Sequence record: MZ475891.1
Strand: one strand, 5' to 3'
DNA: 64,000 nt
The stretch's first letter is position 1; each line of letters begins with the position of its first letter. A model generated the notes under the pieces. That model did not search any database. It saw only the letters and a list, made by a program, of their open reading frames with translations, and was not told the origin of the DNA. Below are positions 11,449-60,110 of the stretch, one piece after another. Made by a program: the position numbers and the translations under genes.

Positions 11449-11474
11449 GATTTATCTCCTTTTAAGACTGGTAG

Positions 11475-11480
11475 AAATTA
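11475..11480 (-). promoter_or_regulatory. motif B (TAATTT) upstream of the tail sheath
   Basis: GATAATTTC between a terminator and the RBS. Confidence 0.45.
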
Positions 11481-11502
11481 TCGTCAATTAGGAGATAAAT
11501 GC

Positions 11503-11528
11503 AAAAAGGGCAGCCGAAGCCACCCTTT
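11503..11528 (-). terminator. intrinsic terminator
   Basis: AGGGTGGC-TTCG-GCTGCCCT followed by TTTT. Confidence 0.85.
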
Positions 11529-11531
11529 AGG

Positions 11532-22786: not shown

Positions 22787-22825
22787 CTAGTCCTATCAGA
22801 GTGTGTAACACAATATGATGGCTGT

Positions 22826-22834
22826 TATTTACAG
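22826..22834 (-). promoter_or_regulatory. motif A (CTGTAAATA) upstream of the DNA polymerase
   Basis: Recurrent 9-mer lying between a terminator and the start codon. Confidence 0.6.
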
Positions 22835-22847
22835 ATTTAGAAACGAG

Positions 22848-22871
22848 AAAGGGCAGCCGAAGCCACCCTTT
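22848..22871 (-). terminator. intrinsic terminator
   Basis: AGGGTGGC-TTCG-GCTGCCCT followed by TT; stem identical to the one at 11503. Confidence 0.8.
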
Positions 22872-22877
22872 GTGTTT

Positions 22878-37798: not shown

Positions 37799-37911
37799 GA
37801 TTATCCTCGGCTGGGGCAATTGTTCGAATCGAGTAAAAATTAGCGACAAGGAGCTGTTTATTTCTGATCTTAGCGCAGGAAGACTTTACAAATTTTTTGA
37901 CTGAGAATGAC

Positions 37912-37939
37912 AAAAGGGCCACCCGAAGGCAGCCCTTTT
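37912..37939 (-). terminator. intrinsic terminator, T-tracts on both sides
   Basis: AAAAGGGCTGCC-TTCG-GGTGGCCCTTTT. Confidence 0.85.
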
Positions 37940-37971
37940 GTTTTCGCATCTGTATAGCTGACCGAAGTCAA

Positions 37972-45764: not shown

Positions 45765-45792
45765 GATATTTACCTTTACGAAGTGTACGAGA

Positions 45793-45798
45793 AAATTA
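45793..45798 (-). promoter_or_regulatory. motif B upstream of the endolysin
   Basis: GATAATTTT directly after a terminator. Confidence 0.45.
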
Positions 45799-45812
45799 TC
45801 ATAGGGAACGAC

Positions 45813-45832
45813 AAAAGGGGCCGAAGCCCCTT
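45813..45832 (-). terminator. intrinsic terminator
   Basis: AAGGGGC-TTCG-GCCCCTT followed by TT. Confidence 0.85.
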
Positions 45833-49914: not shown

Positions 49915-49951
49915 AGCGCTTGCCTATGTGTAGTGTATTGTTGATGGACGT

Positions 49952-49960
49952 TATTTACAG
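49952..49960 (-). promoter_or_regulatory. motif A upstream of the Rad50 operon
   Basis: CTGTAAATA after a terminator. Confidence 0.6.
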
Positions 49961-49978
49961 TATTTGAGGCATACAGAC

Positions 49979-50010
49979 AAAAAGAAGGGCCACCATCTAG
50001 GCAGCCCTTG
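49979..50010 (-). terminator. intrinsic terminator
   Basis: AAGGGCTGCC-TAGAT-GGTGGCCCTT followed by CTTTTT. Confidence 0.75.
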
Positions 50011-50016
50011 CATGTC

Positions 50017-51150: not shown

Positions 51151-51699
51151 TCAGACGGTACCTAATACTTCAAGCACATCTTCGTCGTCCACACTTGCAG
51201 ACCACGAACGCATAACAGAAGCATTGCCGCGATTGCCTGTCAGCATTGATTTAACTGCTGGTGTGGCTTCGATTTCGGCATAGTGTTCCAAGAGAGCTTT
51301 GTCATCTTTGAACCACATAATGGAGTTACCGTCCTTAGGGACGATCAAGAATTGGGTAGGCTTCTGGGTGACGTTTAACGTCAGGTAGTAATCACCAGCA
51401 CCTTTAGGAGTCAGCATCGGCATTGGCTTCATCGCATACATGAAGTCCTTAGCGTGCATGAGTTTCTGATCGCCGAGCAACCAGATTGCGCCTTCTTCGC
51501 CTTGACGCACAGCAGACAAATCGCCTTTACGTGTTGCAATCGTTCCGAATACATCTTTATCGAAACGTGACAGACCGAAGATCAGCGATGCGAGACGCTT
51601 CAGGTCCGGGGTCGTGCATGGACTGTTGATTACAGCCATACCCTCAGACCCAAGTGTGAATTTAGAGAGTGAAATAAAGAGTTCCATCGTAACGTCCAT
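51151..51699 (-). CDS. hypothetical protein (MELFISLSK tag)
   Basis: 182 aa; alternative ATG at 51687. Confidence 0.6.
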   Translation of the reverse strand: MDVTMELFISLSKFTLGSEGMAVINSPCTTPDLKRLASLIFGLSRFDKDVFGTIATRKGDLSAVRQGEEGAIWLLGDQKLMHAKDFMYAMKPMPMLTPKGAGDYYLTLNVTQKPTQFLIVPKDGNSIMWFKDDKALLEHYAEIEATPAVKSMLTGNRGNASVMRSWSASVDDEDVLEVLGTV

Positions 51700-51752
51700 A
51701 CCGTCTTATGAATGTATGGTAAAATTAGTGTTCCTTAAGACATTTCTGAAAT

Positions 51753-51782
51753 AAAAAAGGGCGACCCTTAGGCCACCCTTTT
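51753..51782 (-). terminator. intrinsic terminator
   Basis: AGGGTGGCC-TAAG-GGTCGCCCT followed by TTTTT. Confidence 0.8.
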
Positions 51783-51797
51783 GTTAGTTATTTACCA

Positions 51798-53075
51798 CTA
51801 CTTCTTCTTTTTCTTTTTCTTGGGCTTTTCGTCTTCGTCGTCATCTTCGACTTCGTTACCCAATTTCACAGACAGCTTGCCTTCATAAATGTCGGCCATC
51901 AGACTGAGGATAGTTGCTTCCAACATAATGTCAGCAGGCACGGAGGTACTGTTGAATGCTACCTCTGCTTCTGCCAGTGCTTTCTGCAAATAGATCAGGC
52001 AAACAAGATTGACCTTAATCTTCTCTTGCTTAACCATATTCAGGAACATCTTGAGGCCAGCAGACTGCCACTTGTTTGTGTCAGAGTAATGACCAAGCGC
52101 ACCGTGAAGTACCCAGCGTGCTTTCGCTACGATTGCTCGTGGGTTGTTTGCTTCACGCAGGAACTGAATGACGCCGATAAGGTCCATCGCAATGAACGCA
52201 CCGATAGTCTGAACTGCTTTGCCTTCCATTTCAATTTCTGGATCGGCCGCTGCAAGTTCTGCCACCAGCTTCTTATCAAACGCTTCACCGCCTTTAACTG
52301 ACGCAAAGATGTTTTGCATCATCGTGATTGCACCGCGCATCTGACCGCCTGCATACTCGGCAACCTGATGCAACGCTGATTCAGCTTTATCACGCGCTTT
52401 ATCTTTCTTAGGCATGATGCCAAGAATATCAGCGATTTCTGACAGACGCTTCGCAATGATGTCGGTAGGAATCGGCCTGATAGGAAGTTGTGTCATACGA
52501 CTGATCATCGTATCTTTCATCTTCTCAGGGTTCGTGGTCACAAAGATGAACACGACATGCGCTGGTGGTTCTTCAATGATCTTGAGGAACTTCGATTCGG
52601 CTGCGCTCGACATGAGGTGCGCTTCATCGAGAATGAACACACGGCGCTTGAACATAGGTGCCAGAGGTGCTGAGTCAACGATGCGCTGCGAGCCTTCAAC
52701 TTTACCAGAGTCGCTACCCATATCGAACTCTTGCACGTCAGGGTGCTGGCCGTTGTTGTACATCATGCGACACGAGGCACACTTACCACACGCGCTAAAC
52801 GAATCACAGTTGATGTACTTTGCGACGAGACGCGCAAACGTTGTTTTGCCGCTACCCAGATGACCTGTGATAATCATCGTTGATGGAACTGTTTTCGACT
52901 TCTGCCAACCGTTCATGATCTTAACGATGTGGTCTTGACCTACATAGTCTTCGATACGAGTCGGTCGGAACTGAGCGGCAAAGTTTACCGTAGTCAGTTC
53001 AGTAGAAGATTCGGACTTGGAACTATCTGAACCAAAGTCGCGTTTCTTCTTCTTTTTCTTTTCTTCTTTCGCCAT
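51798..53075 (-). CDS. dnaX: clamp loader AAA+ subunit (DNA polymerase III gamma/tau-like)
   Basis: FRPTRIEDYVGQDHI, GHLGSGKTT, zinc module C...CGKCASC, LDEAH, LK.IEEPP and SR. Confidence 0.9.
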   Translation of the reverse strand: MAKEEKKKKKKRDFGSDSSKSESSTELTTVNFAAQFRPTRIEDYVGQDHIVKIMNGWQKSKTVPSTMIITGHLGSGKTTFARLVAKYINCDSFSACGKCASCRMMYNNGQHPDVQEFDMGSDSGKVEGSQRIVDSAPLAPMFKRRVFILDEAHLMSSAAESKFLKIIEEPPAHVVFIFVTTNPEKMKDTMISRMTQLPIRPIPTDIIAKRLSEIADILGIMPKKDKARDKAESALHQVAEYAGGQMRGAITMMQNIFASVKGGEAFDKKLVAELAAADPEIEMEGKAVQTIGAFIAMDLIGVIQFLREANNPRAIVAKARWVLHGALGHYSDTNKWQSAGLKMFLNMVKQEKIKVNLVCLIYLQKALAEAEVAFNSTSVPADIMLEATILSLMADIYEGKLSVKLGNEVEDDDEDEKPKKKKKKK

Positions 53076-53111
53076 GATGCTATTGCCCTTTAGTTTGATG
53101 CTTACTGTCGA

Positions 53112-53120
53112 TATTTACAG
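53112..53120 (-). promoter_or_regulatory. motif A upstream of the clamp loader
   Basis: CTGTAAATA after a terminator. Confidence 0.6.
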
Positions 53121-53129
53121 ATTTTAGAC

Positions 53130-53165
53130 AAAAAGAAAGGACCACATCCAAAATGGAGGGTCCTT
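53130..53165 (-). terminator. intrinsic terminator
   Basis: AAGGACC...GGTCCTT stem followed by TCTTTTT. Confidence 0.65.
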
Positions 53166-53216
53166 AAAAAGTCTATCTCTGGTATGGGACAGCTATCACT
53201 AGTGGCAACAGGTGAT

Positions 53217-53426: not shown

Positions 53427-53475
53427 AACATCTCCTGAATATTAAACCTCAACGTTCTTGAATTATGTTTACAGA

Positions 53476-53871
53476 TTGCTTCGGTCCGTCCTTGCGATCT
53501 AAAGTCAGAATAGTCTTAAACTCCAATAAGCTCTTGTTAGAACGTATTGGAGTCCACCCTGTCAGATGACGGTCGTTCAGGGCTTTCTCCCCGCACACTT
53601 ATATAGCGCCGTGCGGCAGGCTGCGCTCGCGAGGTCTTATGTTTTCCACGGCAGGTGGTCCAGGAGGTAGCGTCCTCTGAAAAGATACCCGCCGCACAAC
53701 AGCCTCGCTATCGGCCAATCAGCGATACGCGGTGTTACGCTGAATCGACCTAAATGACTCTGGCCGAGTCGTGTACAAAAAAGAGTTCGGTCCCAATCAA
53801 AAAGATGGCGAAAAAGAAAGGGACCGAACAAAAGGCACTCAGCGCAAACTCCTTATGCACTGTTTTTGTAC
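53476..53871 (-). ncRNA. candidate large structured non-coding RNA
   Basis: No well-supported CDS. Multiple 5-10 bp helices, including G-U pairs that work only on the minus strand. Upstream TAATTT motif at 53878-53883. Confidence 0.55.
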
Positions 53872-53877
53872 TTGGGA

Positions 53878-53883
53878 AAATTA
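53878..53883 (-). promoter_or_regulatory. motif B upstream of the candidate ncRNA
   Basis: ACTAATTTT, 7 nt before the first helix. Confidence 0.45.
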
Positions 53884-53911
53884 GTGACATTCCCTTTTAT
53901 TCAGAAAATTC

Positions 53912-59724: not shown

Positions 59725-59753
59725 ATCGTGATTACCTGAGTTTTTCTATCTGA

Positions 59754-59762
59754 TATTTACAG
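59754..59762 (-). promoter_or_regulatory. motif A upstream of the minimal polymerase
   Basis: AATCTGTAAATA. Confidence 0.55.
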
Positions 59763-59782
59763 ATTCAGACTTATCTTATGAC

Positions 59783-60100
59783 CCGTACGCTACAGCGCTT
59801 GGTACGGCTACAGCTACTACAGCGGAGCTAGCGGGATACGCGCTTGGCTTGCTCGAAACATGGAAGGAGAGGTACATCTTTAGGCGGCACGTTTTGTAGA
59901 GGCTGAATCCGAGAGATTAGCACTATCAATGCCCCTCCACCCATGCTGGAGCTGCTTAGAATAGCATTCTGTTAGGATAATTTAGGTCGTCTAAACCGTG
60001 TAAATTTTCCCGAGAAAACAGACGATTTTCCGTAAAACACGCCCGTTTTCAGACAAAAACCAGAAAAATCTTAATAAAATCAAGGACTTTTCCGAAAACT
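59783..60100. repeat. origin-like non-coding region with short direct repeats and phased A/T tracts
   Basis: CTACAGC three times (59790, 59808, 59817), inverted repeat CCGTAC/GTACGG, and TTTTC..AAAA units at 60005, 60026, 60046 and 60088. Confidence 0.5.
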
Positions 60101-60110
60101 ACTCAGGAAA

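Follow-up and report, generated by a model that had tools for sequence, protein, structure and literature searches.

Evidence for a conserved, pseudoknot-containing RNA in a gene-free gap of Erwinia and Dickeya jumbo phages

Structured orphan RNAs that are several hundred nucleotides long are uncommon, and several of them have turned out to be ribozymes or unexpected RNA assemblies. Rfam 15 includes GOLLD, ROOL, OLE, raiA, HEARO, pRNA, 6S RNA, tmRNA and RNase P RNA, as well as the group I and group II introns and all riboswitch classes. The kind closest to the RNA described here is that of the large structured orphan RNAs, of which GOLLD and ROOL are examples. GOLLD, ROOL and OLE form homo-oligomers (PMC12286853).

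The window analyzed here, a stretch of 64,000 nt, corresponds to bases 124001-188000 of Erwinia phage pEa_SNUABM_13, a jumbo phage of 264.7 kb. From position 1 up to ~61900, every annotated gene of the window is on the minus strand. The gap at 53427-53911 (485 nt), between a 69-aa gene and a 191-aa gene, was recognized in an initial annotation as the longest gene-free gap of the window, and it is (the runner-up measures 386 nt). That annotation placed in it a structured non-coding RNA of ~400 nt, encoded on the minus strand and outside the known families, a view that is borne out by the present analysis at a length of ~350-400 nt; we consider it very probable that the minus strand of the gap encodes a conserved structured RNA. 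None of the 4227 models of Rfam 15 matched the window at gathering thresholds, nor the corresponding loci of seven relatives, and the permissive E-value mode returned noise only (best 20.6 bits against a threshold of 50). ARAGORN detected no tRNA or tmRNA in the window, and literature searches returned no description of the RNA and no transcriptome of these phages.

Phage source and distribution of the gap

The 191-aa gene is referred to as HAD-like, a label based only on a DxDxT-type motif and on PHROG matches to a polynucleotide-kinase/phosphatase family. A single-protein search with its product found relatives in the same phage group only, and no annotation was obtained when five neighboring proteins were compared with NCBIfam and PDB sequences. 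The clamp-loader protein (51798-53075, minus strand) carries lysine runs at its start (MAKEEKKKKKKR...) and at its end (...KPKKKKKKK), which are encoded by long A/T runs.

A distant blastn search with the gap matched 46 phage records. Nine of them are near-identical, namely pEa_SNUABM_13 and its close relatives, and the others, 64-72% identical, come from Alexandravirus, with Dickeya phage AD1 among them, and from Sasquatchvirus Y3. In all three groups the gap is syntenic and carries no gene annotation, and its length is 467-480 nt in all relatives' loci retrieved. The identity of the gap to its relatives (0.69) is equaled or undercut by that of most flanking genes (0.54-0.70), including the HAD-like gene (0.54-0.57), the 69-aa gene (0.62-0.67) and a 111-aa gene (0.56-0.62); the clamp loader (~0.77) is the sole flanking gene more identical than the gap.

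Tracing the clamp loader led to more diverged copies, which occur in Yoloswagvirus, Rivsvirus and Salmondvirus; three environmental phage contigs carry diverged copies as well. Yoloswag and pEa_SNUABM_5 retain a recognizable 5' domain and 3' core around a different and longer middle, and one of the environmental contigs is similar to this type. The Salmondvirus phages JA13, JA11, JA29 and JA33 have the core only, and their RNA is ~280 nt long. Altogether, the RNA is carried by 56 of 50,697 phage records, all from Erwinia or Dickeya jumbo phages, and by the three environmental contigs. The phages that come next by clamp loader, PaBG and Lu11, lack such a gap and gave no match.

Other candidate homologs were rejected. 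Alcaligenes phage Afa-NA1, whose clamp loader is 56% identical to that of the window, has a 482-nt gap upstream of the gene (2441-2922 of the extracted locus), which is filled with CAACTGATACATGAG-like repeat units and is a different region. An exact-pattern scan of a public viral collection returned known phages, the three environmental phage contigs and three chance matches. A metagenome scan of the same kind with the palindrome of helix P12 (described below) returned 120 loci, nearly all by chance; their covariance-model scores were at most 35 bits and owed to the hairpin alone, and two of them (L042 and L163) proved unrelated once read.

Strand and architecture of the RNA

The minus-sense RNA from 53872 to 53515 folds to -141.2 kcal/mol (z = -5.2), and none of 100 shuffled sequences folded as well, whereas the plus-sense fold has z = -3.0. 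Across 15 sequences the consensus energy is -110.9 kcal/mol in the minus sense vs. -68.4 kcal/mol in the plus sense, and the minus-sense consensus pairs contain 149 G-U cells vs. six A-C cells. Selection acts on the RNA (minus) strand. The initial annotation had argued for structure from the many helices and for this strand from two of them with G-U pairs; the structure exceeds chance expectation, most of its helices are kept by compensatory changes in relatives, and the strand argument is confirmed by the alignment.

ORFs of 46-64 aa are present in the region, and none is conserved in any frame, as frame, length, position and strand all vary among the clades. The 64-aa ORF at 53637-53831, which the initial annotation had named as the coding alternative, has equivalents of 54, 32 or 21 aa elsewhere, and the indels in the aligned gap have lengths that are not multiples of three. 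The coding reading was rejected. Annotated and unannotated ORFs fall at the homologous locus in Yoloswag (1743-1907 and 2542-2745 of the extracted sequence) and in pEa_SNUABM_5 (1734-1859). The hypothetical-protein ORFs gp204 (Yoloswag) and gp214 (SNUABM_5) overlie the RNA on opposite strands and are probably spurious. Yoloswag also has an unannotated 67-aa ORF similar to the 69-aa gene of the window and to its SNUABM_5 homolog.

The RNA spans ~53872 to at least 53520 (~355 nt) on the minus strand, which is also the strand of the neighboring genes; we infer both ends from the sequence. Twelve helices are backed by covariation. They are arranged in three parts: a 5' three-way junction (P1-P3), a lineage-variable middle (P4 and P5), and a conserved 3' core made of nested P6-P8, an H-type pseudoknot, P11 and P12. 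When the three covariation sets are taken together, 93-98% of the cells are paired and 43 of 86 pairs show compensatory change, counts that come from only about six independent lineages and are biased toward the tested structure in two of the three sets, which were made on alignments fitted to it. All helices and motifs listed in the initial annotation are present in the sequence, and most of the helices recur below; the exceptions, which lack comparative support, are the 10-bp complementarity of 53611-20 with 53688-97, the GAGG/CCTC stem and a hairpin with a second GGCC loop. The pseudoknot and the two-domain build had escaped that annotation, as had the resemblance of its 10-bp hairpin to a terminator.

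The 5' domain (53773-53871, minus strand) was examined in a covariance-model-guided alignment of 22 sequences, in which 97.6% of the cells are paired, compared with 34-47% in slid-partner controls, and 15 of 25 pairs show compensatory change. P1 (53863-71/53773-81) is a 9-bp helix, P2 (53856-62/53840-46) carries an invariant GGAGU in its loop, and P3 (53820-29/53785-94) is a 10-bp helix followed by a U-run at 53777-82. P3 is paired in 100% of the cells, with nine of its 10 pairs covarying, and its stem sequence is wholly replaced in Yoloswag and SNUABM_5 while the pairing is kept. In every clade, and in all 22 sequences, P3 is a G+C-rich stem of 9-12 bp directly followed by 5-12 U. Together with its six U (53777-53829, minus strand) it has the form of an intrinsic terminator lying within the RNA, and it may terminate transcription to some degree. 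The loop of P3 is 25 nt in the window and 8 nt in Yoloswag, and a consensus scan that requires a terminator loop of 3-8 nt makes no call at P3. Across phages the U-run at the homologous sites is 5 to 12 nt long, and members of the SNUABM_13 clade, near-identical as they are, still range from 6 to 9 nt. P1 joins the 5' end to bases past the U-run, and lineages keep this complementarity with differing sequences (GTAC/GTAC, CGTAA/TTACG, GCGTAA/TTGTGC). Because P1 pairs bases that lie past the U-run, the read-through form would also be under selection.

In the middle domain, the P4 hairpin GACTC-GGCCA-GAGTC (53756-53770, minus strand) is invariant and shows no covariation. It is present in the SNUABM_13, Alexandravirus and Sasquatchvirus clades, where its loop GGCC is invariant (19 sequences) and unpaired in the supported fold, and is absent in Yoloswag, SNUABM_5 and JA13. 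P5 (53713-53750, minus strand) is a long hairpin (GGTC..TCAGC / GCTGA..GGCC) with an invariant apical loop, GTAACACCGCGT. Its cells are 90% paired in a MAFFT alignment fitted to no structure, a C-G to U-A change occurs in Y3, and it is found as well by single-sequence folding and by RNAalifold. Relative to Y3, pEp_SNUABM_52 carries a 10-nt tandem duplication, GTAACACCGC (columns 185-194 of alignment A1), in this otherwise invariant loop. In Yoloswagvirus and Rivsvirus the middle domain is replaced.

The initial annotation had paired the P4 loop with that of a second hairpin, as complementary GGCC loops. The 5-bp hairpin around GATTGGCCGAT can indeed be drawn, but in the comparatively supported fold P5 takes up the second GGCC (53713-16) as its 3' strand, opposite GGTC at 53747-50. 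The hairpin needed to expose it shows zero compensatory change at the aligned columns and is mutually exclusive with P5 and P6. In Y3 three segments have changed together (AGT/ACT/AGT), so that this hairpin stays available there as an alternative to P5.

The 3' core begins with nested P6-P8 (53629-53708, minus strand), in which P6 (53703-08/53629-34), P7 (53698-701/53641-44) and P8 (53688-96/53647-55) enclose one another. In the same unfitted alignment, 93.1% of the P4-P8 cells are paired and compensatory change is seen in 12 of 33 pairs (three of five in P7, seven of 10 in P8); slid controls are 28-40% paired. Double changes within clades are located at P8 partner positions: five of the seven gap differences of pEa_SNUABM_25 fall there, and they include G-C to U-A, G-U to G-C and one G-U to A-A. 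The hexamers GCTACC in the P8 loop (53666-71) and TAAGAC at 53634-39 are invariant. The comparison of clades also bears on an alternative helix that the initial annotation had proposed, in which one CCGCAC would pair with either of two GTGCGG copies. Both copies exist; the upstream copy is restricted to the SNUABM_13 clade, and its pairing clashes with the covarying P8 and S2. The 10-bp complementarity (53688-97/53611-20), which includes one G-U, exists only in the clade of the window, and in SNUABM_25 two of its bases have changed with their P8 partners and 53611-20 has not.

Downstream of P6-P8 lies an H-type pseudoknot (53591-53627, minus strand), in which S1 (53623-27/53605-09) and S2 (53610-16/53591-97) follow each other in the crossing order S1-5', S2-5', S1-3', S2-3'. 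Five of six S2 pairs show compensatory change. The crossing topology was found at the same site, with 12-13 bp, in 10 of 10 sequences tested from six lineages; these ten have at least six different stem sequences, and only 0-18 of 300 shuffles per sequence reach the observed number of base pairs. The stems measure 5-8 bp, loop 1 0-6 nt, the junction 0-3 nt and loop 3, A-rich in most sequences, 6-9 nt; a conserved GGGGAGAAAG follows. In Yoloswag and SNUABM_5, AATCCCTCT is present in the P3 loop and also as a pseudoknot strand.

P11 (CCCTG/CAGGG; 53557-53582, minus strand) is a longer helix in the relatives, with compensatory change in six of eight pairs, and its loop GACCGTCATC does not vary among the three window-type clades. 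The element that caps P11 in those clades, ACCGTCAT, occurs in Yoloswag (~1810-1835) and SNUABM_5 (~1775-1800) in a different hairpin upstream of GCTACC. P12, the terminal hairpin (53520-53553, minus strand), is formed by ACTCCAATA / TATTGGAGT and an inner stem, and 98% of its cells are paired. Its seven proximal pairs are invariant, and the two adjoining outer-stem pairs and the inner stem covary (e.g., ..AAGA/TCTT.. in JA13). For S2, P11 and P12 together (23 sequences), 94.8% of the cells are paired and 16 of 28 pairs are compensatory, and slid controls reach 28-50%. A tail past P12 (TTAAGAYT..TCTKACTTTA; 53500-53519, minus strand) is near-invariant in the 15 aligned sequences of A1 and unconserved in Yoloswag, SNUABM_5 and JA13.

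Many of the loop and junction blocks are invariant, and within the core seven such blocks are invariant across the clades that carry them. A by-eye search for partners of GCTACC, GACCGTCATC, GTAACACCGCGT and TAAGAC within the RNA gave none that was convincing, and no catalytic motif, partner protein, target or tertiary contact was found.

Candidate transcription signals and possible roles

Two recurrent motifs flank the RNA. Motif B, CTAATTTT (53877-53884, minus strand), lies 6-7 nt upstream of P1 and contains the TAATTT (53878-83) already seen in the initial annotation. Its TAATT is invariant directly upstream of the RNA in all clades, and the motif recurs in seven other intergenic gaps of the window (e.g., 11449-11531, 37799-37971, 45765-45831 and 51688-51797), which suggests that it is a promoter. 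Late expression, as initially proposed, is reasonable, since TAATTT-type motifs also precede the tail sheath and endolysin-like genes. Outside the RNA proper, a variant of motif A, CTGTAAACATAATTCA (53459-53474, minus strand), stands between the RNA and the 69-aa gene, at the 3' boundary where a motif A promoter had been claimed. Its CTGTAAA is invariant in 15 of 15 sequences of A1, and the variant is promoter-like and would serve the 69-aa gene and the clamp loader. Motif A, CTGTAAATA, recurs before the DNA polymerase, HNH endonuclease, SbcD and clamp-loader genes (gaps such as 22787-22877, 49915-50016 and 53076-53216), is annotated in the record of phage Lu11 as a putative middle/late promoter, and in our view resembles the T4 late promoter TATAAATA. 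By motif recurrence and the function of the genes that follow, motifs A and B appear to represent two classes of promoter in these phages. Both are usually preceded by a GGGYGGC-TTCG-GCYRCCC terminator with a T-run. The phage group encodes sigma-70-type factors (PMC7412058), and the motifs may be read by the host core polymerase with phage sigma factors. The second-longest gap of the window (59725-60110, 386 nt) lies ~2 kb inside the switch of gene orientation and holds TTTTCCG(T/A)AAA copies, several inverted repeats and, at its end, a copy of motif A; it may be regulatory or origin-like.

JA13 and JA29 have motif B first, then the core, then a G+C-rich hairpin with T9 that shows compensatory changes, and finally motif A. 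Between the RNA and the homolog of the 69-aa gene, Yoloswag and SNUABM_5 have a 107-aa membrane-like gene. Because of the placement of the motifs, the terminator in JA13 and JA29 and the intervening gene in Yoloswag and SNUABM_5, we favor an independent RNA gene over a leader.

Our preferred reading, to which we give a probability of roughly 0.55, is that of a folded RNA that has a gene of its own, is expressed late and acts in trans, and of which a short isoform ending at P3 may exist. Transcription would start at the late-type motif 6-7 nt before P1; part of it may stop at P3 and yield a short RNA of ~95 nt, and the remainder would read through to the full RNA, P1 being able to form only after read-through. 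The folded core would then act in trans late in infection, and not as the leader of a downstream mRNA, either in complex with protein or through a self-contained tertiary fold (a scaffold, decoy or catalyst). In the clade of the window no terminator follows P12, so the RNA could extend into the 69-aa/clamp-loader mRNA. A further proposal, which we put forward tentatively, is that the late ~355-nt RNA represents a new class of complex-fold phage RNA whose core acts by itself, as a ribozyme or a machine built of RNA alone or of RNA and protein. If so, it could serve, e.g., as a decoy for a host defense or RNA-repair factor or as a late-infection scaffold, and how much short RNA is made relative to full-length RNA would be set by the terminator-like 5' domain.

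If the RNA were instead a cis-acting leader or attenuator, it would be the 5' UTR of the 69-aa/clamp-loader transcript, with P3 and its U-run as a regulated terminator and the downstream domain tuning stability or translation. Such a role would suit a terminator-like hairpin just after the promoter motif, the lack of a terminator after P12 in the clade of the window, and a site on the same strand within the block of replication genes. We nevertheless regard it as unlikely, given that the largest conserved domain lies downstream and not upstream of that hairpin, that a separate promoter motif stands between the RNA and the next gene, that Yoloswag and SNUABM_5 have another gene downstream, and that in JA13 and JA29 a strong terminator lies between the RNA and the clamp loader. 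Less likely than a leader is a multimeric or switching RNA, in which palindromic GGCC loops dimerize and alternative pairings (AGC/GCT/AGC; the two GTGCGG copies) act as a switch. The absence of P4 in three clades, the place of the second GGCC in the P5 stem, the uncompensated hairpin that excludes P5 and P6, and the clade-specific GTGCGG duplication, not maintained in SNUABM_25, all speak against it. In its favor are the invariant, unpaired GGCC of the P4 loop, the joint change in Y3 that keeps both P5 and the second hairpin possible, and a different hairpin in JA13 with TTGGCCTT in its loop.

The location directly after the HAD-like gene in all clades would also fit a 3' element of the upstream operon, i.e., a processing, stability or termination module of the HAD-like gene transcript, with P3 ending read-through from upstream. 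This is improbable, as the stop codon and P1 are separated by a conserved promoter motif, structure that is conserved and covaries continues for ~250 nt past the terminator-like hairpin, and the ordinary terminators of the genome are short tetraloop hairpins immediately past the stop codon. Selection on the DNA itself, for an origin, a packaging site or an array of protein-binding palindromes, might account for the invariant perfect inverted repeat of P12 and for the adjoining replication genes. It is very improbable in view of the wobble asymmetry between the strands, the far better fold on one of them and helices that keep pairing despite sequence turnover; moreover, the 9-mer of the inverted repeat is not enriched elsewhere in the window. 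We give least credence to one or more unannotated small protein genes, such as the 64-aa ORF: short ORFs do exist, and annotated ones cover the homologous region in Yoloswag and SNUABM_5, but none is constant across clades, the indels disregard the reading frame, and those two ORFs lie on opposite strands.

The RNA shows clear covariation, a pseudoknot and a modular build, with the core alone in Salmondvirus, and its phages can be cultivated on tractable hosts, which makes deletion, pull-down and structure work feasible. Annotation can be corrected in 56 records that lack an RNA gene, and for the two hypothetical-protein ORFs that overlie it. The two motifs provide candidate promoter classes for a phage group whose transcription program is unmapped in the literature searched.

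Comparison with known RNAs

Several known kinds of RNA were considered for this locus. A group I or group II intron is at odds with flanking ORFs that are complete, each with its own stop, Shine-Dalgarno sequence and start, that are separately conserved, and that in some clades are separated by a further gene. A riboswitch or attenuator does not fit, since P6-P12, the largest of the conserved and covarying domains, is found 75-260 nt past the terminator-like hairpin and since what follows the RNA varies: the 69-aa gene in the window type, the membrane-like gene of 107 aa in Yoloswag and SNUABM_5 or, in JA13, a terminator and then the clamp loader. A CsrA/RsmA sponge was dismissed because only one hairpin-loop GGA, that of the P2 loop, is conserved (alignments A1 and A5). 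For an oligomerizing kissing-loop RNA of the pRNA or ROOL/GOLLD type the signs are divided: the GGCC of the P4 loop does not vary in three clades, three others lack the hairpin, and the second GGCC lies in a stem.

Partial likenesses remain at the level of modules. As in riboswitch or attenuator leaders, a promoter-proximal folded domain contains an intrinsic-terminator-like hairpin with a U-run; unlike them, the main conserved domain comes after that hairpin, the downstream gene is inconstant, the RNA has its own terminator in Salmondvirus, and no riboswitch model matches. The pseudoknot resembles those of the T4 gene 32 operator, SAM-II and preQ1-II in its two stems of 5-8 bp in crossing order and its short loop 1, but it is one module of a much larger RNA, with no sequence similarity to these H-type pseudoknots and no adjacent start codon. 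The predicted short isoform would be similar to Hfq-type small RNAs in its length (~95 nt), its end in a G+C-rich hairpin with a U-tail and its conserved exposed loop, except that its 5' end pairs with bases past the U-run.

Among phage RNAs, phi29 pRNA is likewise a phage-encoded structured RNA, and the palindromic GGCC loop could in principle give loop-loop contacts. The Erwinia RNA differs from it in being much larger, in having a pseudoknot and in its location in the replication module; it has no match to the pRNA family, and its GGCC hairpin is missing in three clades. The Erwinia jumbo phages of this group are not known to be related to phi29. GOLLD, ROOL and OLE are longer than the Erwinia phage RNA (~355 nt, or ~280 nt in Salmondvirus), which matches no Rfam model, has no tRNA genes around it in the window and is limited to the 56 Erwinia/Dickeya jumbo-phage records and three environmental contigs. 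With GOLLD and ROOL it has in common only the size class, the phage origin and the unassigned role. The likeness to GOLLD, ROOL and OLE is that of a phage-borne RNA of several hundred nucleotides, with many helices and with invariant loops and junctions.
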